Of a stretch of DNA of 64,000 bases, positions 4,544-16,246 are shown one piece after another. Every line of letters starts with the position of its first letter. Position 1 is the first letter of the stretch. Both the position numbers and the translations under genes were made by a program. The notes beneath the pieces were generated by a model, which was not told the DNA's origin, did no database searches, and saw only the letters and a program-made list of their open reading frames with translations. Origin of the DNA: Hyaloraphidium curvatum SAG 235-1 (taxonomy: Eukaryota > Fungi > Monoblepharomycota); NCBI GenBank assembly GCA_025558095.1, contig JAIVFI010000002.1, forward strand, positions 62,001 through 126,000, in the 5' to 3' direction.

Positions 4544-5075
4544 TCACGGTTTCCACAGCTTGTGGCCCGTCCAGAGGGCGGAGATGGCTGCCATTGAAGC
4601 GTCGAATAAGATACCCAGTTCTCGCCCTCATCCGTTCTGTCTCTGGCCCCACGCACCTGCGATCGCCGCCGGCCTCGCCGCCTTCCCCCTCGAAACCGTT
4701 CCGTAGACCCCGACCTCGAGCCCAAAGTACCCCAGCGCCAGCAGGAAGGTCGCATGCGCCGCACGGAGTAGCCCCCTGTTCTCCGGCTCTGCCGCCGCGG
4801 CGAGGGAGACGGCGCATGTGGCAGCGGTCCAGACGGCGAAGGTGCGGCCGGCCAGGGGGGAGAATCCGCGGCCGCCATCAAACAACTGGGTTTCGAGGTT
4901 CTCCCCGAGTAGGCGGCGGGGGTAGGCGTAGCCAAGGGCCACGGCGAAGAGCCTCATCGCGGCGACCAGAGTGAGCCAATTGGAGAGGGTGGCGTGCGCG
5001 AACAGGCGGTCGAGAAGCTGCCAGACGCGTCAATCGCAAAGCGAAGCATGTAATGAGGCGACCCACTAATGCCAT
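4544..5075 (-). CDS. ERG28: Ergosterol biosynthesis protein 28-like
   Basis: Spliced MAL|LLDRLFAHATLSNWLTLV...SPLAGRTFAVWT...TFLLALGYFGLEVGVYGT...|AISALWTGHKLWKP*. Matches the Erg28 PLxxRTFxxWT and F..E..V motifs; two introns. Confidence 0.8.
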
Positions 5076-5357
5076 TTGGGTCCAAAGGACGCCTGGGTGT
5101 CTGGGTTGAAGTCAAGATGGAAACGACTCCGGTTCTCTGGCACACCGCCTTCTGCCCGCTCGGAACACGACGTGGCGCCTCTTGGCCGCGAAGATCGCAA
5201 AACCTCACGTGAAAAGCGGGGAATCCGGGCTTATATGCCAGGATGCGGCCGCGACAACAGAGTGGACGGTGTGCAGTCTTCTCGCCCGACTTCGCACCTC
5301 GCCACCGCCTGGAACCCTCATGCCGCCTGAAGAACCGGGCTATTGTCTAACGAGGTT

Positions 5358-5453
5358 CTGGAGCTCCACATGGTCCCATCGGACCGCAGCGAGGACCTGC
5401 TGGAGGGCACCGGGCCCGCGACCCCACCCGGAGAGGCGAAAGCTCGGCTGTAG
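5358..5453 (+). pseudogene. Orphan 3' fragment of the Deg protease gene (LELHMVPSDRSEDLLEGTGPATPPGEAKARL*)
   Basis: Identical to the last 96 nt of CDS 9041-10705, with no matching upstream coding sequence. Confidence 0.85.
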
Positions 5454-5770
5454 CGAGGCTCTCCATTCATTCGTTGGCCAGCTTTCTTTTGGCGGCATCG
5501 ACGGCTTCCGTCCTGGACGTGTCTTGTCCTGGCTCGGCCTCGCCTGAGCGTGAGCTCGGAATGAGCGCTGCGTTGAGCCGATCCACGACCGAGCCCCATG
5601 GCCCGACATGCTCCTGCCCTCCGCTCCGAAATCCGCCACAGGTGGCCGCGGGAGCGAGGTGATGGGACGTCGTGCTGTCCGCAGCCGCTCTGGATGGCAG
5701 CGGGCGCGGCACCAGGAGCCCGTGGGGCAGTCTTGCCCGTGCGCAGCCCGCGATGCCAGCTGCCTGCGCG

Positions 5771-5822
5771 CCCGTAATTTCCCCTATGCCCGGAGAACGG
5801 TGGCGGCCCGCCCCCAATAAAT
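5771..5822 (+). promoter_or_regulatory. Candidate snRNA promoter: PSE/USE-like CCCGTAATTTCCCC at about -80 and TATA-like AATAAAT at about -35 (same at 11023-11074)
   Basis: Two AT-rich motifs in GC-rich DNA at spacing typical of snRNA promoters upstream of U1; function inferred. Confidence 0.4.
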
Positions 5823-5850
5823 CCGGATCGACCTCGTCTGCTGTGTCCTC

Positions 5851-6016
5851 ATACTTACCTTGCCTCGTCGTGCCGGTGATCATGAAGGCTGGACGGCGGT
5901 GCGGGAGGTCCGGCATTGCACAACCGTCGGAAAGCCCGTGCTGGACTGGGCTTCGGCTCAGAGCCGGGGCGCATTTTTTACCCCCGGGTAGGCGGGGTTC
6001 GCCTCGTCCACCTGGC
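5851..6016 (+). ncRNA. U1: U1 spliceosomal snRNA, copy A
   Basis: 5' ATACTTACCT; loop I GATCATGAAG (U1-70K site); loop II ATTGCAC (U1A site); SL III with TTCG loop; helix H TGCCTC/GGGGCG; Sm-like ATTTTTTA; SL IV with TTCG loop; about 165 nt. Confidence 0.95.
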
Positions 6017-6267
6017 ATCAATGAAGCAAAGACGGAAACGAATGAAGGGGTTCCTTCGGGCCGCGTCGGGGCCGCCGCCGCCGGATGGCGAAAACGAAGG
6101 CTGCCACCCCGCAAGCATGGGGAAGGAGAGTCGGGTGCAGGTTCGATGTACACCGAGAACAGGAGACTAGAAATCGTCCTTGCCTCTATTTCGCTCGAAC
6201 TGCCATGTTGCGTGATCCGCGACGTCGTCGCCGATGTGATTGCCGCGTATCCCCTCCTTCGCCGAGC

Positions 6268-8908
6268 ATGGCGTCCCCCATTGTGGTCGTGCGCTGTGCG
6301 GCCCCTGATCCTCTCGGAATCGTCGCTGCAACGCGTCCTTTCCACTTTGCGCGGGACGGAACGGCCTGGATACAGAGCACGGGCGTCGTGGTGGCCATTT
6401 CCGCGGGAGACGGCCGGGTGCCTGGAGACGGACCAGCGCGTGCCTCGGATGCCCATCCGACCTCTGATTCTGGGCCCGACGGCACTTTTCGTCATGGGCA
6501 TGGAGGAGAACGGCTTGCGGGCGCCCCGAAGCGCGTTGTTTGGGTGCTCTCCCACGCCTCGGCTGTGACCCCGTGCCTGGACATCGAGGCGGCTCTGACG
6601 GCTTCTTCTGGCCAACCGGCCGCGTCCGCTCATTCTGCGGATTCATCTGCGCGTCAGGGACGCCGTGAAAACGCTCTCGATGGCGGCAGAGACCTCCCCA
6701 CGGTCCTAGCAGGTGCCCAGACCGAGATTCTGCTTTCGCAGACCGCTCCCTATCTTCCTGCCACGGTTCGCGCCATTTTTCCAGTACCCGGCGTCGCAGA
6801 CGCCATAGCAAAGCTAGCGGAAGGCCCTTGGTGGAGGATCGGATGGGGCGGCGTCTCTCTGCGCTGGGCCGACATGAGGCTCATCTCGAAGGGCGACGCC
6901 GGCGTCGGTTGGACAACCTGCGACGCCACGCACCTCGCATTGCTGTCAGTCGATGTCCCGGACGGTATTGCTCTTCCAGAGGTGTTTCGGTGGAACACCA
7001 AGGCGTCGCGCGCGCCAACTCCGGGCGATCCGCTGGTGCTGTACTCGCACCCGTTCTCCCTCGTCAATCCGGAAATGTTCTGGGGCTCATTGGGTTCCGG
7101 CGTCGTCGCAAACCTGGTCTACGCTCAACGGAAGAACGAGGCTGGATCTGAGCCAGGCGACGGTCATGGTCGACCTAGACTGATCCTGACGGACGCGCGT
7201 TATCTCTCCGGATCCGAAGGCGGCCTTGTTCTTGCTCCCGCCAGGCAGGACGCAGCGTCAACATCATCCTCGGCACCATCATCACAGCCGCCATGGATGT
7301 CCGACCCCATCGGCATGATCTGGCCTCCGCTGTGCCGGCTTGACTCCTCGCACCCGATACCACCCATGCCGCCGCAGATACCCAAAACCGATCGCGAGAG
7401 GGAGAAAATGAGGGAGCGCGAAGCCATTAGGGTGCAGCCGCTCGAGTTTTCGCTCGTGGTGCCCGCCGAACTAGTCGCTGTGGCGCTCGATCGCGCTGGA
7501 CTTGGCGGCATGGTTGGAGCCGGGACGGCTACGTCGGCCCCTGATCGCGGCGGTGGCTCTTTTCTAGATTCCACCCAGACCGAGCACTCTCTCGGAGCAT
7601 CGCTCACGCCCGTGGCTCCCGCCAACCTCGCCGCCGCAGCGCAGGTTGAGCGAAAGGGACATCCACGGCTTCATGCGCCGCCGGTGCCGGACCTCTTTAG
7701 GACAATGTGCCCGATGGTGACCGTGTCGAGTGCGCGTGGCGGCACGACATGGGCTTCCGGCGTACTTGTCGTCGGCCGCGAGCCCGCGACGGAAGTCTAC
7801 AACTACATGCCGCGTGGGCAGAGCAATTCCACCGAATCGCTTGGCCCACGGAAAGCATGTGGGTGCCATGGGAGTGACAGTGTCGTTCCGTTATGAGCCT
7901 GACCCGTTTCTTCCAGACATCCTCACCAATGCCCACGTCCTTCTCCCCCATCTCCCGACCAACCCCCGCGGACACAACCGCTCTGTCGGCCCCAAGCTGG
8001 CTGCTAACGCTCCTCCGCCGGTCGAAACCAACATGGTAAAGCCGCGAGATTGGGAGCTGGGCACCGTACGGTGCGGGGCGCGCATCTGGCTTCCCGACGG
8101 CGACAAGGGCCGCATCCGCGACGAGCAGTTCCTTCATCCGATCTTCATCGCCCCTCCGTCGTCGCTCTGGGATCTCGCGGTCCTGGGGCCCGTCTACCTG
8201 GGCGAGGACGTCGAACGGATGCTCGAGTGGACCGAGGCGGCCGGCAACAGCACGGGTCGAGGTCTTGGCGAGCTCGTCGAGGGGTGCGAGGCCGCAGCCA
8301 TCGGACACGGTGTTTTCGGCCCGCGCTCGGATCTCGCGCCAACCGTCTCTCGGGGCATCCTACGCCGCGTCGTTCGGATACCTACAGAGCCGGCCGCTCT
8401 GCCTATCCAACTTCACTCGAACGCTGCCGTGCACAACGGATCCTCGGGTGGGCCCCTGCTGGCGCTCGACGGCGGGCGCTGGAAGTGGGCCGGACTGGTC
8501 TGCTCGAACCTCTCCTTCACCCCGCCGGGACAGGCCGCCCCGGGCGGCCGCAAGTTCCCTGTCAAGATGCCCTCCGTCAACTTCTCCGTGCCGATCGCGG
8601 TTATCGAACCCCTTCTGAAAGGCCTCTTTTCCGGCGACGGTGGAGCGGCCTTCGCGCGGCTCTGCTCTCCGTCAGCCCTGCACGAACCCTCCTTCTCTCC
8701 GGAGCTCGAGCTCCTCCTCGACGAGAAGCACTCGCACTTCGTGCGCTCTGTCTGGAGCATCGGATTCTCCAGGATGCCCGAGGAGGACGGTGAGATTGGG
8801 CGGCGGAGAAAGAGGGTGAGGGAGCTAGTGGAAGCGAGAAAGAGGTGGGCCGAGGAGCAGGAACGGAAAGTGGATCCGGATCAGGGCAAGCCAAAGGCGA
8901 AGCTCTGA
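6268..8908 (+). CDS. TYSND1: Peroxisomal leader-peptide-processing protease (TYSND1/DEG15-like), PTS1 -AKL
   Basis: N-terminal degenerate trypsin domain (LTDARYLSGSEGG); intron 7859-7916 restores WASGVLV...YILTNAHV; DLAVL; HNGSSGGP; ends KPKAKL*. Confidence 0.85.
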
Positions 8909-9040
8909 TGTGCTGCGAATATGGTCCGTCCAATTCTATACCTGAAATGCTCTTCCATCGTCGTCTGCATGGCTGTCTAGCCAACATGCAGCCTGCATTT
9001 TGGGACGTACTAGACGCCGTCCCCCCCTCACTCGACACCA

Positions 9041-10705
9041 ATGCCGCCGGCGCAACCTGAGCTCTCCGCGGCTTCGGAGCTCCGCGATTTGCTGCCGAGC
9101 ATAGTCAAGCTCGAAGTCGCACACTCGCAGCCGAACTTTGCGCTGCCCTGGCAGCAGGATCGCAGCTTCCGGTCGCACTCCACTGGATTCACCATTGCCG
9201 GCCGTCGGATCCTGACCAATGCCCACTGTGTCGACGGAGCGGCCCAAATCCGCGTGCGCCGACCGGGATCGCCGCGAAGATTCGCGGCAGATGTACTTGC
9301 CATCGGCAGGGACTGCGATTTGGCCGTTTTGACAGTCCGCGAGCCTGCCTTCTGGATGGACGCGGCGGACAAGGCCAAAGCTGCACCCTTCGTGGACATT
9401 GCCGCGCGGGCAAAGGCCGCAGCTTTGCCAGAACTTGAAGAAAGGGTCATCGCCGTGGGATTCCCGACCGGAGGTGATACCGTCAGCGTGACGAGCGGCG
9501 TCGTGAGCCGCGTGGAGATGCAGACATACTCCAACGGCGGCACGCGCCTCCTCGCCGTTCAGGTCGACGCTGCGATCAATCCCGGCAACTCAGGCGGTCC
9601 CGTGTTTGACGCCCAAAGGCGATTCGTTGGCATCGCGTTCCAGGCGCTCACTCAGAGCCAGAATGTCGGCTACATCATTCCGGTTCCTGTTGTGTGGCAC
9701 TTTCTCGAGGACCTGGAGCGCAACGGACGGTACACGGGCATTCCGGCTCTCATGTTTGAAACGCAGGGCCTGGAGAATGCGGCCCTTCGCGAGTACTTGG
9801 GTCTGCCCGAGAACATGTCGGGCGTGCTGGTCACGCGCGTGTACGATCTCTGTCCCTTCAAGGACCTCAAACCTGGAGATGTGATCACCGAGATCGATGG
9901 ACATGGCGTGGCGGATGATCACACCGTGCAGTTTTCCCCAGATTTGCTGCTCCTCGGGCCTCTGATGTCGTTGAATGACAGTTCCACGCCGCGTTCAAAC
10001 ACCGGATCCAGCAACACATCTGCCCCCGCAAGTGGCGCTACACGGCCGGCGGAACGAATCGAGATGGAGTTCGTCGTCACCCAGCACCATGTCGGCGACA
10101 AGTGCACGCTGACCCTGTTTCGGGACGGCACCACCCGCTTCGTGACTGCGACCTTGGCTCCTCCCTCGCCGCTCGTGCCGCTGGAGGGGACCCGCAGGCA
10201 CCGTGGCGGCCACTTGTTGCTGCCCAGCTACAGGCTCGTCGGCGGCATTGTGCTGACTGTCCTCACCGAGTCCCTCATTGCCTCCTCGGCCCACTTCTCG
10301 AACGAGTTGGGAGGTCTTTTGGCGCCGTGGTACGAAGCCCCAAAGAGATACGCGGACGAGGAGGCTGTTGTCTGCGGGGGCGTTTTGCCTCATTCCTCCA
10401 CCATCGGGTATGAGGGTCTGACCATGCTCAGGCTCGCACGCGTATGCGGTCAAGAGGCCAGGAACCTGGCGCAAGTCAGCCGTATTCTTGATGGAGCGAC
10501 CAAGGAAGCAGTGAGCAGCGGGACCAAACCGTTTCTCAAGCTGGAGTTTGAGCGCGGACCTGTAGCTGTTCTGGACGCCCGTTCCCTGGACAAAGACACC
10601 AAGGAAGTGCTGGAGCTCCACATGGTCCCATCGGACCGCAGCGAGGACCTGCTGGAGGGCACCGGGCCCGCGACCCCACCCGGAGAGGCGAAAGCTCGGC
10701 TGTAG
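9041..10705 (+). CDS. Deg/HtrA serine protease with PDZ domains (plant DEG2/9/10-type), PTS1 -ARL
   Basis: PNFALPWQ, ILTNAHCV, DCDLAVL, GGDTVSVTSGVVSR, VQVDAAINPGNSGGP, PDZ LKPGDVITEIDG; apparently intronless; ends EAKARL*. Confidence 0.9.
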   Translation: MPPAQPELSAASELRDLLPSIVKLEVAHSQPNFALPWQQDRSFRSHSTGFTIAGRRILTNAHCVDGAAQIRVRRPGSPRRFAADVLAIGRDCDLAVLTVREPAFWMDAADKAKAAPFVDIAARAKAAALPELEERVIAVGFPTGGDTVSVTSGVVSRVEMQTYSNGGTRLLAVQVDAAINPGNSGGPVFDAQRRFVGIAFQALTQSQNVGYIIPVPVVWHFLEDLERNGRYTGIPALMFETQGLENAALREYLGLPENMSGVLVTRVYDLCPFKDLKPGDVITEIDGHGVADDHTVQFSPDLLLLGPLMSLNDSSTPRSNTGSSNTSAPASGATRPAERIEMEFVVTQHHVGDKCTLTLFRDGTTRFVTATLAPPSPLVPLEGTRRHRGGHLLLPSYRLVGGIVLTVLTESLIASSAHFSNELGGLLAPWYEAPKRYADEEAVVCGGVLPHSSTIGYEGLTMLRLARVCGQEARNLAQVSRILDGATKEAVSSGTKPFLKLEFERGPVAVLDARSLDKDTKEVLELHMVPSDRSEDLLEGTGPATPPGEAKARL

Positions 10706-11344
10706 CGAGGCTCTCCATTCATTCGTTGGCCAGCTTTCTTTTGGCGGCATCGACGGCTTCCGTCCTGGACGTGTCTTGTCCTGGCTCGGCCTCGCCTGAG
10801 CGTGAGCTCGGAATGAGCGCTGCGTTGAGCCGATCCACGACCGAGCCCCATGGCCCGACATGCTCCTGCCCTCCGCTCCGAAATCCGCCACAGGTGGCCG
10901 CGGGAGCGAGGTGATGGGACGTCGTGCTGTCCGCAGCCGCTCTGGATGGCAGCGGGCGCGGCACCAGGAGCCCGTGGGGCAGTCTTGCCCGTGCGCAGCC
11001 CGCGATGCCAGCTGCCTGCGCGCCCGTAATTTCCCCTATGCCCGGAGAACGGTGGCGGCCCGCCCCCAATAAATCCGGATCGACCTCGTCTGCCGTGTCC
11101 TCATACTTACCTTGCCTCGTCGTGCCGGTGATCATGAAGGCTGGACGGCGGTGCGGGAGGTCCGGCATTGCACAACCGTCGGAAAGCCCGTGCTGGACTG
11201 GGCTTCGGCTCAGAGCCGGGGCGCATTTTTTACCCCCGGGTAGGCGGGGTTCGCCTCGTCCACCTGGCATCAATGAAGCAAAGACGGAAACGAATGAAGG
11301 GGTTCCTTCGGGCCGCGTCGGGGCCGCCGCCGCCGGATGGCGAA
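10610..11344 (+). repeat. 735-bp direct repeat, copy B (native context: overlaps the end of the Deg gene)
   Basis: Near-identical to 5358-6092. Confidence 0.95.
11103..11268 (+). ncRNA. U1: U1 spliceosomal snRNA, copy B
   Basis: Same sequence and structural elements as 5851-6016. Confidence 0.95.
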
Positions 11345-11611
11345 CGAAGTCGCTTTGAAACGATCAAGACCACGGAAAGAAATGAGACGTCATATCCATG
11401 CTCGGTGTGCTGGCAGCGGAGCCGCACGCGCGGCTGGTCATTTGGGGCCCGAATGTCGACCGGTTGGTCCGCTCCGCGAAGCAACGTTGAGCTTGCACAA
11501 GCGAACTCTGGAGCGAGGTTCCTGACGCATGAACCGATAGCGAGAAGGTCGCGACGTGGAGCGGACGATGCAGCACCCGGCAGTCCCTTGAAGTGAAGCC
11601 GGTGTAAACGG

Positions 11612-12764
11612 ATGTCTCTCTCCCCGACTCCGTTGCCGCCTTTCGCGGCCCATTTGTTGTCTCTCGGCGCCGATCCCGTTGGCTTTGACATCGATGCGTC
11701 GGCAGCACACCGGCTGGACGCCTCGCGGCCCTTGTGCCCGGCCCTGATCCACCCGGATCGCGTCTCCCGCTTCATTTCCCGTGCCGGGCCCGAGGAACAA
11801 AATAGCGCAATCCTATGTAATAAAGGGCTCATGGGTGGTGGCGGAGGTGCCACCCTACACGGCGGGATGGGGATGGTACTGTCGGCAGCGTCGGCGGAGA
11901 GTACCGCATCGAGGTCGTTGGGACAGGCCGTTTCGCTGCGATCCATTACCGTGGACTACAAGGGCCCTGTTCCGCTTCCGGCTTGGTTGATTGGCGAGGG
12001 ACGGACGATCTCGAGCGGGGAGCACGAGGTCGTGGGGGAAGGGCTGCTTCGCCTGCCGGACAAGGACGTCGCGCTCGTTCGCAGCACGGCAACTTGGGTG
12101 CCGGCGCGGGACATTCCATCTTCCAGCTTTGTTCACGGATACGCTCCGGAACTCCCCACAGGACTCGAACGTCTGATTCAATCTGCGGGGCCTGCGAATC
12201 ATGATTATTCCTCCTCCGAGCTGGTTGTGATCTCGAACCTTACTCCACCGACGGCTTCCCACCGTTTTGATCACCCCGCCCGAATCCACTTCATTTGGAA
12301 GACGCTTTACGCGCCGGGCCAGCTCGAGCGGTCTTTCGAAACATTGAGCCAGGACGGTCATGGCGAAAGCTGGTACGAATTTCGGAACGCGGATGGGTGC
12401 CTTTCGCGGAACACGGCAGCTGTGGACACTGGAATTCTCTTTTCCATTGTCGAGTGAGTCCTCCTTGAGCGACATGTGCTGCTCGGACAGAGTTGGCTAA
12501 CGTTAATTCCGCTCTCACAGCTTTTCAATGTCGAACTTTGCCAGGGTCGTCGGTCAAGGCTTGACCGTCACGGCGACCCTGACTTTCGAGCCCGCTCCTG
12601 CCGCAGCCCAGTTTGTCTCCGGCTGGATCCAGGTCGTGCACAAGTGCGCCAAGGCGGATGGGCGGAAGCTGTTCCTGGAGAGCACTGCGCGCGACGGACA
12701 AGGCAATCTAATTGCGACTGGCAAAGGCCTGTGGATAAGGATCGGGCCGTTGCCTAAGCTATAG
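11612..12764 (+). CDS. Tandem hotdog-fold thioesterase (PaaI/THEM4-like), PTS1-like -PKL
   Basis: LHGG motif; ITVDYKGPVPL; intron 12454-12520 gives GILFSIVDFSM; second hotdog ends GRKLFLES...IATGKGLWIRIGPLPKL*. Confidence 0.7.
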
Positions 12765-13017: not shown

Positions 13018-15950
13018 ATGCGTGCCGCTCTGCTGCTGCTCGCGCTCGGCGAACTGCTCGTGCCGGCCCTTTCCGCTCCCGCGCGGCGCTCGGAGCCTCG
13101 CTACCGTCCCTCGCCTCGCTTCGAACCCGTCCGGTCCTACGGCTTCAATCGGCAGGCCGAGGTGGGCATTCTCACGCTCTTCTCTAGTGAAGGCGACATT
13201 CGAACCGAATGCGGCAGTTCCACCGGCTGCACGTCGACCTCCTGTCGCCCACGCCCGAGTTCGACATAGCTGCCCTCAGAAAGAGGCAGGACGAGGGAGC
13301 CGGCCACGATGAGCCTTCGTCCGGTACGTTCACCCGCTTCACGTACGAGTTACGGTGCCGGCTAACGCGTTTCTCCAATCCGTGCAGCCAACAGCACCGA
13401 GCTTCTGGCTGCCGAACAGGCCGTGTACGACTACTTTGTTCGCGTGTATGCCTATCTGGATCCCGAGGTCGACGCATACGTCTACGACGCGCACATCGAC
13501 GCCAAGGGCCTTTCCTTCGTCTAGTGGGTGAAAAATGCAGGCGCGATCGGGCCGAAGTGGCTAACGCGACCGTACTTCCAGCATCGTCCAGCTAGTCAAC
13601 GGCATCGTGATCACCAACCGCGAAGCCTCCGCCACCGTCTACAACGGCACGGTGATCTCGTCGGCCGGCAACCTCCTCACGCAGGCCCAGACCGAGGCCG
13701 CGAAGCGTCTGTCCACGGCGCCGCGCAACTCCCCGGCCGATGCTGCAAAGGCCGTGATGGCGCAGCAGTACGCCGAAGCCAACGAGACCTTCCCTTCCAA
13801 CGTCGGCCTGCAGGTCGATTCGGAGTTTGACGCGGGGGACAACGCGACATATTACTACGTCACGGGCGTGGGCGAGCTGGGGTACACCGAGCCCATTTGG
13901 GCGGAGCTGGAGTTTTGGTACGTGACTTGCGCTCTGCTCGCTGCATGAGCTGAGGCTGCTTGGCGTTTCCAGGGCATTTGAGAACGGGACGTTGGACTTG
14001 AGCTGGTACCTGGACGTCGAAGACGATTACGGAACGTGCGGATTTGGACGTCGACGCCCGCCTGCCCGCGAAACTCATCTTGCCGCCTCCCCCAGCTGGA
14101 CGGGCTACGTCGTCTCGGCCTCGACCACCAACGCGACCACGCCGAGGATCCACGCCGTCGTCAGCTACGAGACCAACGCGGCCTCTAGCGTCTATCTGTC
14201 ATTCCCGCCGAACGGCACGTTCGATCCCCTGACCGTCCCGCCGGCGCGCTACACCGAAGGTGCCGTGGCGAACGCCGTCGCAAGTCCGCAGGGGTGGACC
14301 GGCGACGCCGTACCCGTCACCAGCGGGAACAACGTCAGGGTCATGTGGACGCCCGAGGGGCTCCTGGTGGGTTCTCGGTCGCTTCGAAGGGGCTCATCTC
14401 CGCAGACCTGACGCGCGAGCCTGCGAGTGCAGGAGCCTGCTGTCGACAACGTGGCCTCCGACTTTGTCGTTCCCTACAGCGTACAGAGTCCAGTGTCTCC
14501 AGAATCTGTCAATTCGTCGCTCAGCATGCTCTTCTTCTACACGAACTGTGGGACTCGCCTTCGGACAGGGCGCTGAGCGTCATCCTCACCTGCATGCCGC
14601 AGACATCCACGACATGACCTACATCTACGGATTCGACGAGGCCTCGGGCAACTTCCAGGAGAGCAACTTTGGCCGCACAGCATTTGGAGAGAAGGATCGC
14701 ATAAATGCCCTCGCCCAGGTGCGACCCGGCCCGGATGCCTGCCGCCCGCGTTGATCTGACCCATTCCGCAGTTCGGCTCCCTGGCATGCCCCCTCCGGTT
14801 CAAGGAGCGAGGCGGCTGCATGAACAACGCCAACTTCGCCACTCCGCCCGACGGCAAGAAGCCTGTAATGCGGTATTACTTATTTGACGTCAGCGGCACG
14901 GTGCGCGACTCGACCATCGACAGGGAGGTCATCGCCCATGAGATCATGCACGGGATCAGCAACCGGCTCACCGGGGGCAGGCGGGACGGGGCCTGCCTCG
15001 AGACCCAGGTCAGCGGCGGGATGGGCGAGGGATGGGGGGACGTGCTGGGGCTGCTCACGGGGTTTACCGCGGCCAGCACGCCGGCGGACGACAGGCTGAT
15101 GGGGGCGTTCCTGCTCGGGGGGAGGAGCATTCGGAGCTATCCGTACTCGACGAGCGGGGCGAAGAACCCGCTGCACTACGGGTCGCTCAACAACCCAGAG
15201 ATTGCGGACAAGGTGCACGCGATCGGGACCGTGTGGGCGTCGATGCTCTTTGAGGTGTACTGTGGGTGTCGTGACCTGTCCCGTGCGTATCCATCTTTTC
15301 TCACGATCCGCCGCCGGCAGGGCAAATGATGGGGCAGACCAACTCCTTCGGCGACCTCATGGATCCCAAGGCGACGGGCTCCAACAACGCCTTCATGCTG
15401 TACCTCATCACAGGCCTGAAGCTGCAGCCGTGCAACCCGACCTTTGTGCAAGCCCGCGACGGTGCGCCATTTGTCGTGGGGCGCATGCACACTCGCCAGC
15501 ATCTGACCGGGCTCTGCAGCCTTCCTCCTCGCAGACGCAACAGTCGGCAACAAGCTCTACCTGTGTTCCATCTGGCGCGGCTTCGCCAAGCGCGGCCTGG
15601 GCGTCAACGCCACCGGCACGGAGGAGCCCAACTGGCTGCACATCCCTTCGTGGGACGTGCCCGCCGGATGCACCGGGGTCGCGGAGGCCGACAAGGTCGG
15701 CGCGGCCACTTTCGTACGGCCCGGAGGGGCAGGGGTCGCCAAGCCGACGGACAATTCGGTGCCGAACATCTGCGGGAGCGCGGACTGCGGGAATCTGGGG
15801 AGCAGGACGACGGCGACCGTGACGAGGCCGACGACGGTGGCGACGGGGACGGGGGCGGCGACGAGCAGCAGGCCGTCCGCGGGGGAGAAGACGATTGCGA
15901 GGCCGTGGCTTGCCCTGGCGGCTGCGGCTTTCTCTCTGGCCGTGCTTTGA
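13018..15950 (+). CDS. Fungalysin (M36) metalloprotease, secreted, probably GPI-anchored; many introns
   Basis: Signal peptide MRAALLLLAL; YGFDEASGNFQESNFG; NNANFATPPDG; HEIMHGISNRLTGG; GGMGEGWGD; VHAIGTVWA; GLKLQPCNPTF; Ser/Thr stalk and hydrophobic tail. Confidence 0.92.
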
Positions 15951-16246
15951 GTAGGTTGGGCTGGGTTTGGAAACTGTGGCGGGCCTTTACGCAGATAGCT
16001 GGAGAATCGTGTGAAGGCCGAGCCGCGAGCCGGTAGAGTGGGGCGTGGAGGCGTGGTGACCGATCCGTTGTAGTTCTAGCTCCGCAGCGAGTAAATATCT
16101 TATGAATATGTGCCCGACGGCCTTGTTTCCTTACTCCTTCGCGCTCCAGATCGAGCCGATTTGTCTTTGGAGTCGGAACCGTCCGTCCCCGAGCACCGCA
16201 TAAACAACGGTAAACACGGACTCGGACCACTCATTCGCGCGGCACG

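Follow-up and report, generated by a model that had tools for sequence, protein, structure and literature searches.

Three adjacent genes for proteins with peroxisomal targeting tails, amongst them a PDZ-bearing HtrA protease, in the chytrid Hyaloraphidium curvatum

Proteolysis within the peroxisomal matrix has been described in terms of Lon and of the TYSND1/DEG15 proteases (PMC4490337, PMC3781343, PMC3830196, PMC3473262). Members of the DEG15/TYSND1 group have a C-proximal protease domain, no PDZ domain and a terminal peroxisomal targeting signal of type 1 (PTS1; PMC3830196), and the cleavage of the type 2 signal (PTS2) is, in the papers cited, described for mammals and plants alone (PMC4490337, PMC3781343). 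Amongst the Deg proteases of plants, Deg15 is the only one that a review lists as peroxisomal (PMC3473262). The locus presented here lies within a stretch of 64 000 nt (hereafter the window; C2:62001-126000) of the 31.9-Mb, 55-contig genome of Hyaloraphidium curvatum, and comprises three adjacent, co-oriented genes, the products of which end in -AKL, -ARL and -PKL: a TYSND1/DEG15-like protease (G1), a Deg protease with PDZ domains (G2) and a protein with a hotdog thioesterase fold (G3). H. curvatum is a monoblepharid chytrid (Monoblepharidomycetes), and proteins encoded in the window have identical counterparts amongst its NCBI entries (DFJ74DRAFT tags). With regard to the third gene, ACOT8 and Tes1 are the peroxisomal members of the TesB-type thioesterases.

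The original prediction had suggested that these genes are a linked peroxisomal module. Of this, the protein families and the conserved tails stand, whilst a linked module is not supported, as the transcripts assemble into separate RNA contigs and the trio is found together in no relative for which the gene context was obtained. The explanation that we favour, with a rough probability of 0.57, is that these are three independently transcribed neighbours encoding peroxisomal proteins, which were brought together by local rearrangement and do not form a conserved module.

Gene models, families and C-terminal tails

The three gene models are given below, with RNA evidence taken from the contigs of one public sequencing run, which is evidently of RNA and is independent of the assembly.

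6268..7858, plus strand: G1 exon 1, 530 codons and the first base of a split codon; contiguous in RNA over 6063-7858
7859..7916, plus strand: G1 intron, 58 nt, GT..AG; skipped by the RNA contig, with the same junction in the NCBI model P0122
7917..8908, plus strand: G1 exon 2, encoding the trypsin-like catalytic domain; stop codon at 8906-8908, C-terminus KPKAKL
9041..10705, plus strand: G2, a single open reading frame (ORF) of 554 aa ending EAKARL; RNA contig over 9025-10639
11612..12453, plus strand: G3 exon 1, encoding the first hotdog and most of the second; RNA contig from 11315, with the NCBI model P0123 in agreement
12454..12520, plus strand: G3 intron, 67 nt, with a GTGAGT donor, a CTAAC branch point and a CAG acceptor; skipped by the RNA contig
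12521..12764, plus strand: G3 exon 2, encoding the rest of the second hotdog; stop codon at 12762-12764, C-terminus GPLPKL

Both the coordinates and the tails first proposed for these genes were reproduced, with the annotated proteins P0122, P0001 and P0123 having the same ends, and the distance of 132 nt from the G1 stop to the G2 start follows from the ORF coordinates. The RNA contig for G1 covers 6063-7858 spliced to 7917-8955, and that for G3 covers 11315-12453 spliced to 12521-12700; both introns are confirmed, because these contigs skip exactly 7859-7916 and 12454-12520. The genes are indeed intron-poor (one intron in G1, none in G2 and one in G3), and their GC content is lower than that of their surroundings, albeit modestly so (0.60-0.65 in the three genes vs 0.676 in the window). 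The exons of G1 and G3 were searched separately, and work on whole proteins used the NCBI models P0122 and P0123. The true G1 protein is of ~860 aa, with exon 1 being uninterrupted in the RNA contig. The NCBI model P0122, at 525 aa, starts inside exon 1 and is both truncated and over-spliced, cutting out stretches that are continuous in the RNA contig and leaving unannotated an N-terminal part of 530 aa that is conserved (42 % identity in a relative).

PTS1-type tails are kept in the orthologues of all three genes, these being (with the H. curvatum tail first) AKL/AKL for G1, ARL/AKL/AKL for G2 and PKL/PKI/PKI for G3; a loss of the signal in orthologues, which would have told against the original prediction, is thus not seen. 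Across the wider G3 family the C-terminus takes the form G-P-x-P-[KR]-[LIM] (PKL, PKI, PKI, PRL, PKM, PRM and PKI), with AKI also amongst the family ends, and no other short feature of this family is as well conserved as its extreme C-terminus. The tails of both proteases are canonical A-[KR]-L tripeptides with a Lys at −4. In Histoplasma, -PKL, -AKI and -ARL are each sufficient for the import of a reporter into peroxisomes (PMC13343957). The pattern [SAP][KR]L fits only 3 of the 381 ORF ends in the window (ORFs of at least 100 codons), two of these being G1 and G2. Peroxisomal targeting of the three products, as predicted from these features, is well supported.

A different view of the same tails would be that at least one of them, most probably -PKL of G3 or -ARL of G2, is inefficient, leaving that protein cytosolic or dual-localised, and that the shared pattern is in part coincidence within an Ala/Arg/Leu-rich genome of 68 % GC. 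In keeping with this, -PRL supports only partial import in Histoplasma, where rare tripeptides are context-dependent (PMC13343957), some G3 paralogues end in PAM, LKL or SKV, and one spurious ORF of the window ends in -PRL. Weighed against it are the retention of the tails amongst orthologues that are 40-57 % identical and variable in the adjoining residues, the canonical form of the G1 and G2 signals with their Lys at −4, and the lack of a presequence in G2; moreover, both TYSND1/DEG15 (PMC3830196) and the thioesterases of the TesB type are well-established residents of peroxisomes. We regard an inefficient tail as improbable.

For G1, a Trypsin_2 match is present in exon 2 only (E 1.4e-7), and no PDZ family is detected in either exon (Pfam, E ≤ 0.01). 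Compared with exon 1, the orthologue P0121 shows 42 % identity, the match extending over 100 % of the length. Exon 2 is 55 % identical to its counterpart at locus L002 of a relative, the product of which likewise ends in -AKL, and the TNAH, WDLAVL and NGSSGGP motifs are unchanged between the two. In the ESM Atlas, the clusters nearest to the annotated protein are TYSND1 and DEG15 (score 0.97), under the names 'Peroxisomal leader peptide-processing protease' and 'Glyoxysomal processing protease'. Exon 1 alone scores 0.96 both to DEG15 (180 shared features) and to TYSND1 (172), and the two halves of the protein together span scores of 0.96-0.97 with 172-182 shared features. The gene is single-copy in the H. 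curvatum genome; PDB sequence searches with G1 returned no matches, and a metagenome scan by exon-2 alignment found no relative. From this evidence, G1 is likely a member of the TYSND1/DEG15 processing proteases. A literature search on Tysnd1 and chytrids found no paper.

A candidate substrate for G1 exists, because the genome encodes a PTS2-bearing 3-ketoacyl-CoA thiolase, the first exon of which reads MASRVEQVASHLAGG, with the PTS2 nonapeptide RVEQVASHL at residues 4-12.

C44:197055-197270: PTS2 thiolase; two short introns come after the N-terminal PTS2

G2 carries Trypsin_2 (5.7e-26), PDZ_2 (5.6e-6) and PDZ_3 (2.8e-21) domains (Pfam), together with the His, Asp and Ser motifs. Amongst solved structures, those nearest to it are Arabidopsis Deg2 (4fln, 4.1e-88) and Deg9 (5il9, 8.8e-88), and the best-scoring database matches are plant and algal proteins named 'protease Do-like 9'. 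Examination of the N-terminal sequence of G2 revealed no presequence. The two proteases are not duplicates of one another, matching by BLASTP at an E-value of 0.03 in motifs only, as had been expected from their different subfamilies, and the initial family assignments (TYSND1/DEG15-like for G1, Deg-PDZ protease for G2 and a hotdog thioesterase fold for G3) hold.

Amongst 120 homologues of G2, the only close relatives are P0002 and P0007 (55-57 % identity), both of which end in -AKL. In a Deg-family phylogeny, built with FastTree only, P0001, P0002 and P0007 form a clade with 100 % support inside the monoblepharid clade, and its sister is P0003, a second Deg2/9-type copy from H. curvatum.

C34:155169-157098: P0003, with a large acidic insert between its PDZ domains

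As read from the genome, P0003 has no PTS1, with its stop codon directly after DRSEDLVEG. Because the PTS1 clade is sister to this PTS1-less protein, the PTS1 form of G2 is, by the phylogeny, an old paralogue that retains its tail. PTS1-type ends also occur in a green-algal clade of Deg2/9/10 type (100 % support), namely VAASKL in P0096, VAASRL in P0097 and AAVCKL in P0119, with one member ending in SKV; it seems that green algae independently retargeted a PDZ-HtrA protease to peroxisomes. The sequences of the algal clade are P0096, P0097 (Chromochloris zofingiensis), P0119 and P0118. A literature search on HtrA, PDZ and peroxisomal targeting signals found only work on DEG15.

The notion that G2 substitutes for a missing peroxisomal Lon was ruled out, as the genome has a Lon protease ending in -AKL, of the peroxisomal type (C4:223021-223700), as well as a second Lon without a PTS1. 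G2 would thus be additional to the usual matrix protease, because that Lon is present. The most novel element of the locus seems to be this clade of PTS1-bearing, Deg2/Deg9-type PDZ-HtrA proteases, with its apparently independent green-algal counterpart.

The separate pieces of G3 show no Pfam match at E ≤ 0.01, and the whole protein gives weak matches to 4HBT_3 in its N-terminal half and 4HBT_3C in its C-terminal half, at 15-16 bits vs cut-offs of 24; the paralogue P0128 exceeds the 4HBT_3C cut-off with 35.5 bits. HMMER, run exhaustively against 1.84 billion representatives, places only 14 proteins in the family. All of its named members are from Hyaloraphidium or Gonapodya, amongst them six H. 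curvatum paralogues besides G3 and a single protein from Gonapodya, and the family thus appears, from these sequences, to be restricted to monoblepharids. The further paralogues (P0127, P0128, P0131, P0133, P0135 and P0136) lie on other contigs, giving seven copies in total, with P0131 and P0133 probably being a tandem pair (consecutive accessions on one contig); the C-terminus is P-[KR]-[LM] in several of the copies. An AlphaFold2 model of G3 built with the 14-row family alignment has a predicted local distance difference test (pLDDT) score of 84 and a predicted template modelling (TM) score of 0.87, as compared to a pLDDT of only 33 when no alignment was supplied. It shows a double hotdog, with two central helices and a sheet around each. 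Foldseek matches of this model include 3cjy (1.5e-14) and the TesB structures 1c8u/4r4u (~1e-13), with 4r9z also falling within 1e-12 to 1e-14, and the family profile matches the PaaI-like 1zki at 1.3e-6. On the strength of the model, G3 is a putative divergent TesB-like double-hotdog acyl-CoA thioesterase, its activity being predicted.

Taken together, the favoured explanation would have all three proteins made in the cytosol and imported by PEX5 via their C-terminal PTS1. G1, as an orthologue of TYSND1/DEG15, would trim imported matrix proteins, for example the PTS2 thiolase. G2 would be a lineage-specific Deg2/Deg9-type paralogue, oligomeric, that gained a PTS1 and may carry out ATP-independent quality control in the matrix, as a protease or chaperone, alongside the peroxisomal Lon. 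G3 would act as a divergent acyl-CoA thioesterase akin to TesB and ACOT8.

A recent duplication with U1 snRNA genes

A direct repeat, each copy of which contains a gene for U1 small nuclear RNA (snRNA), brackets G1 and G2.

5349..6092, core 5358-6092, plus strand: direct repeat copy 1; self-BLAST against copy 2 gives 744 nt at 99.5 % identity
5851..6014, plus strand: U1 snRNA gene, copy 1; Rfam RF00003, 63 bits, E 4.5e-15, full model 1-166
10601..11344, core 10610-11344, plus strand: direct repeat copy 2, covering the end of the G2 coding sequence, the 3′ flank and U1, plus 78 nt that lead into the G3 mRNA contig
11103..11266, plus strand: U1 snRNA gene, copy 2, between G2 and G3; identical to copy 1

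The copies differ at 5351, 5354, 5357 and 5842 only, and because three of these four mismatches fall in the first nine bases, the real repeat unit is one of 735 nt with 1 mismatch. It contains ~32 codons from the end of G2 (with -ARL and the stop codon), the 3′ flank of G2 and a full U1 snRNA gene. Judging from its sequence, copy 2 represents the original context, since what it encodes agrees with the C-terminus conserved amongst G2 orthologues, and copy 1 is a dead fragment upstream of G1, in which the remnant of the G2 tail reaches to 5453. A simple tandem duplication is ruled out by the A-B-A layout, and the DNA upstream of copy 1 holds no Deg-like sequence. The near-identical duplication flanking G1 and G2 shows that a recent local rearrangement has taken place here. 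As regards the U1 genes, their score of 63 bits is below the Rfam gathering score of 69.5, such that they are missed at the gathering threshold; U1 is nonetheless very abundant in the RNA run (unitig 11116-11344, depth 4685).

With two near-identical copies and a left repeat edge that falls within the G2 coding sequence, one might suppose that the A-B-A structure, and with it the -ARL end of G2 or the gene order, is a mis-join of the assembly. All four repeat junctions are, however, found in contigs of the independent RNA run, the left junction of copy 1 forming the loose end of one such contig and its right junction lying within the G1 mRNA contig. In addition, the G2 tail encoded by the repeat matches the C-terminus of the orthologues (HMVPSDRSEDL ... 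A-K-L). An assembly artefact is hardly tenable given these figures, and was rejected on the RNA junction evidence.

The RNA contigs of G1 and G3 each overlap the right-hand end of the repeat by k-1 = 30 nt, and because both do so, the two mRNAs start in or upstream of identical DNA, with the limit that 5′ ends cannot be placed from RNA contigs. A further RNA contig at ~5094-5470 (depth 47) runs from unique upstream sequence into the dead G2 tail, which indicates transcription across this junction; the contig may represent the 5′ end of a minus-strand ERG28-like gene at ~4628-4957.

Transcription and synteny of the trio

The shared transcript that a linked module might have is not borne out, as the three genes are covered by separate RNA contigs at 6063-8955, 9025-10639 and 11315-12700, from which rare read-through cannot be excluded. 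The gap between G1 and G2 that has no RNA coverage is one of 69 nt.

Conservation of the linkage fares no better. Synteny was assessed in two relatives (runs SRR26194948 and SRR23967301) and in Gonapodya loci, and the trio is missing from L001, L002, L003, L019 and L020. In the first relative, locus L001 has the G2 orthologue adjacent to an ADH gene, with neither G1 nor G3 in the 10 kb upstream of it or the 2 kb downstream, and locus L002 reads as a Longin gene, one other gene, the G3 orthologue (-PKI) and the G1 orthologue (-AKL), followed by the contig end. The latter two are co-oriented and 217 nt apart. The L002 block shares microsynteny with the window in the form of the Longin gene and a nearby zinc-finger gene, and the proximity of G3 and G1 there may therefore fit inheritance as well as it does selection. 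An apparent -SRL gene on L002 was discarded as a PTS1 candidate, the ORF call having ended at an intron of the zinc-finger gene. In the second relative, a distant one (L003), a U1 snRNA gene at 6806-6968 is followed by one gene and then by the G3 orthologue (8834-9923), ~1.9 kb downstream of U1, with no G1 or G2 over 11.6 kb. The U1-G3 linkage may hence be older than the H. curvatum arrangement; no U1 is present on L001 or L002. Gonapodya loci with a Deg gene or a G3-family gene show no clustering. As judged from these loci, the arrangement of the trio is specific to H. curvatum.

These data also bear on the proposal that the genes form a selected, co-regulated unit of peroxisomal proteostasis and lipid metabolism, the linkage of which is kept for shared regulation. 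Under this proposal, the G2 promoter would sit within 69-132 nt of the G1 mRNA end, and the duplication would have put identical upstream DNA (U1 and 78 nt) before both G1 and G3. It draws on the tight, co-oriented spacing, the overlap of the contigs for G1 and G3 with the right-hand repeat end, the co-oriented pair at 217 nt on L002, the rarity of chance runs of three such genes, and the depths of the G1, G2 and G3 contigs, which are similar in magnitude (135, 127 and 341), although expression is poorly reflected by contig depth. Against this, the transcripts assemble apart, with contig depth and 5′ ends being uninformative; the trio is conserved nowhere, G2 being unlinked in the closest relative; and the microsynteny of L002 (Longin and zinc-finger genes) may explain the proximity of G3 and G1 by inheritance. 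A co-regulated unit is, on balance, unlikely. The wider claim that peroxisomal matrix genes of Hyaloraphidium lie in linked, co-regulated groups, of which the trio is a proteostasis unit and G2 the first peroxisomal PDZ-HtrA, is more doubtful still.

The favoured explanation, by which the adjacency would reflect a lineage-specific local rearrangement within an old syntenic block that also saw the very recent 735-nt duplication, has several points weighing against it or against its parts. The adjacency of G3 and G1 recurs once, on L002, in an order reversed with respect to H. curvatum. Three PTS1 genes in a row would seldom arise by chance, with a rough estimate of 0.006-0.2 expected per genome (assuming 0.8-2.5 % PTS1 genes amongst ~12,000 genes), a figure that is uncommon but not compelling, given that the pattern was chosen after the fact. 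As for targeting, -PKL and -PKI are weak or rare signals, and the tail of G3 lies ~6 residues past its last strand. The family call for G1 is based on language-model features, architecture and motifs, and the presequence of the thiolase has no evident Cys cleavage site.

The next gene 3′ of G3 encodes a fungalysin (M36) metalloprotease (13607-16036, plus strand, several introns) that is unrelated to peroxisomes; its presence brings three protease genes inside 10 kb.

Comparison with known systems

The proteins of this locus are of more interest than the clustering itself. As an early-diverging fungus, H. curvatum appears to encode three PTS1-tailed proteases, these being Lon, a TYSND1/DEG15 orthologue and a Deg2/Deg9-type HtrA. 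Should import hold true, the PTS2-processing protease would extend to fungi, and an ATP-independent, PDZ-gated quality-control protease would join the peroxisome, seemingly having been recruited twice, in chytrids and in chlorophytes.

As an arrangement, the trio resembles the metabolic gene clusters of fungi and other functional gene clusters of eukaryotes in being co-oriented and tightly spaced, with products predicted for one compartment, and differs from fungal metabolic clusters in having no shared pathway logic, no shared transcript and no conservation as a unit. G3 is like TesB, ACOT8 and yeast Tes1 (Pte1) in its double-hotdog fold (TM by target 0.6-0.7) and in its weak 4HBT_3 and 4HBT_3C matches, which occur in the right order, and shares a PTS1-type end with the peroxisomal members of that family; unlike them, it has an identity of only 10-15 %, lies below Pfam thresholds and belongs to a tiny family. 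G2 shares with plant Deg2, Deg9 and Deg10 a layout of protease, PDZ and PDZ_3 (E ~1e-88), whilst those proteins are chloroplast, nucleolar or mitochondrial, and G2 has no presequence, a conserved PTS1 and a location that is predicted. G1, finally, is longer than either TYSND1 of mammals or DEG15, the glyoxysomal processing protease of plants, at ~860 aa with low-complexity inserts, and occurs in a fungus; like both, it combines a C-proximal trypsin-like domain, no PDZ and a terminal PTS1 with a family-specific N-terminal half, and the ESM Atlas clusters nearest to it carry their names.

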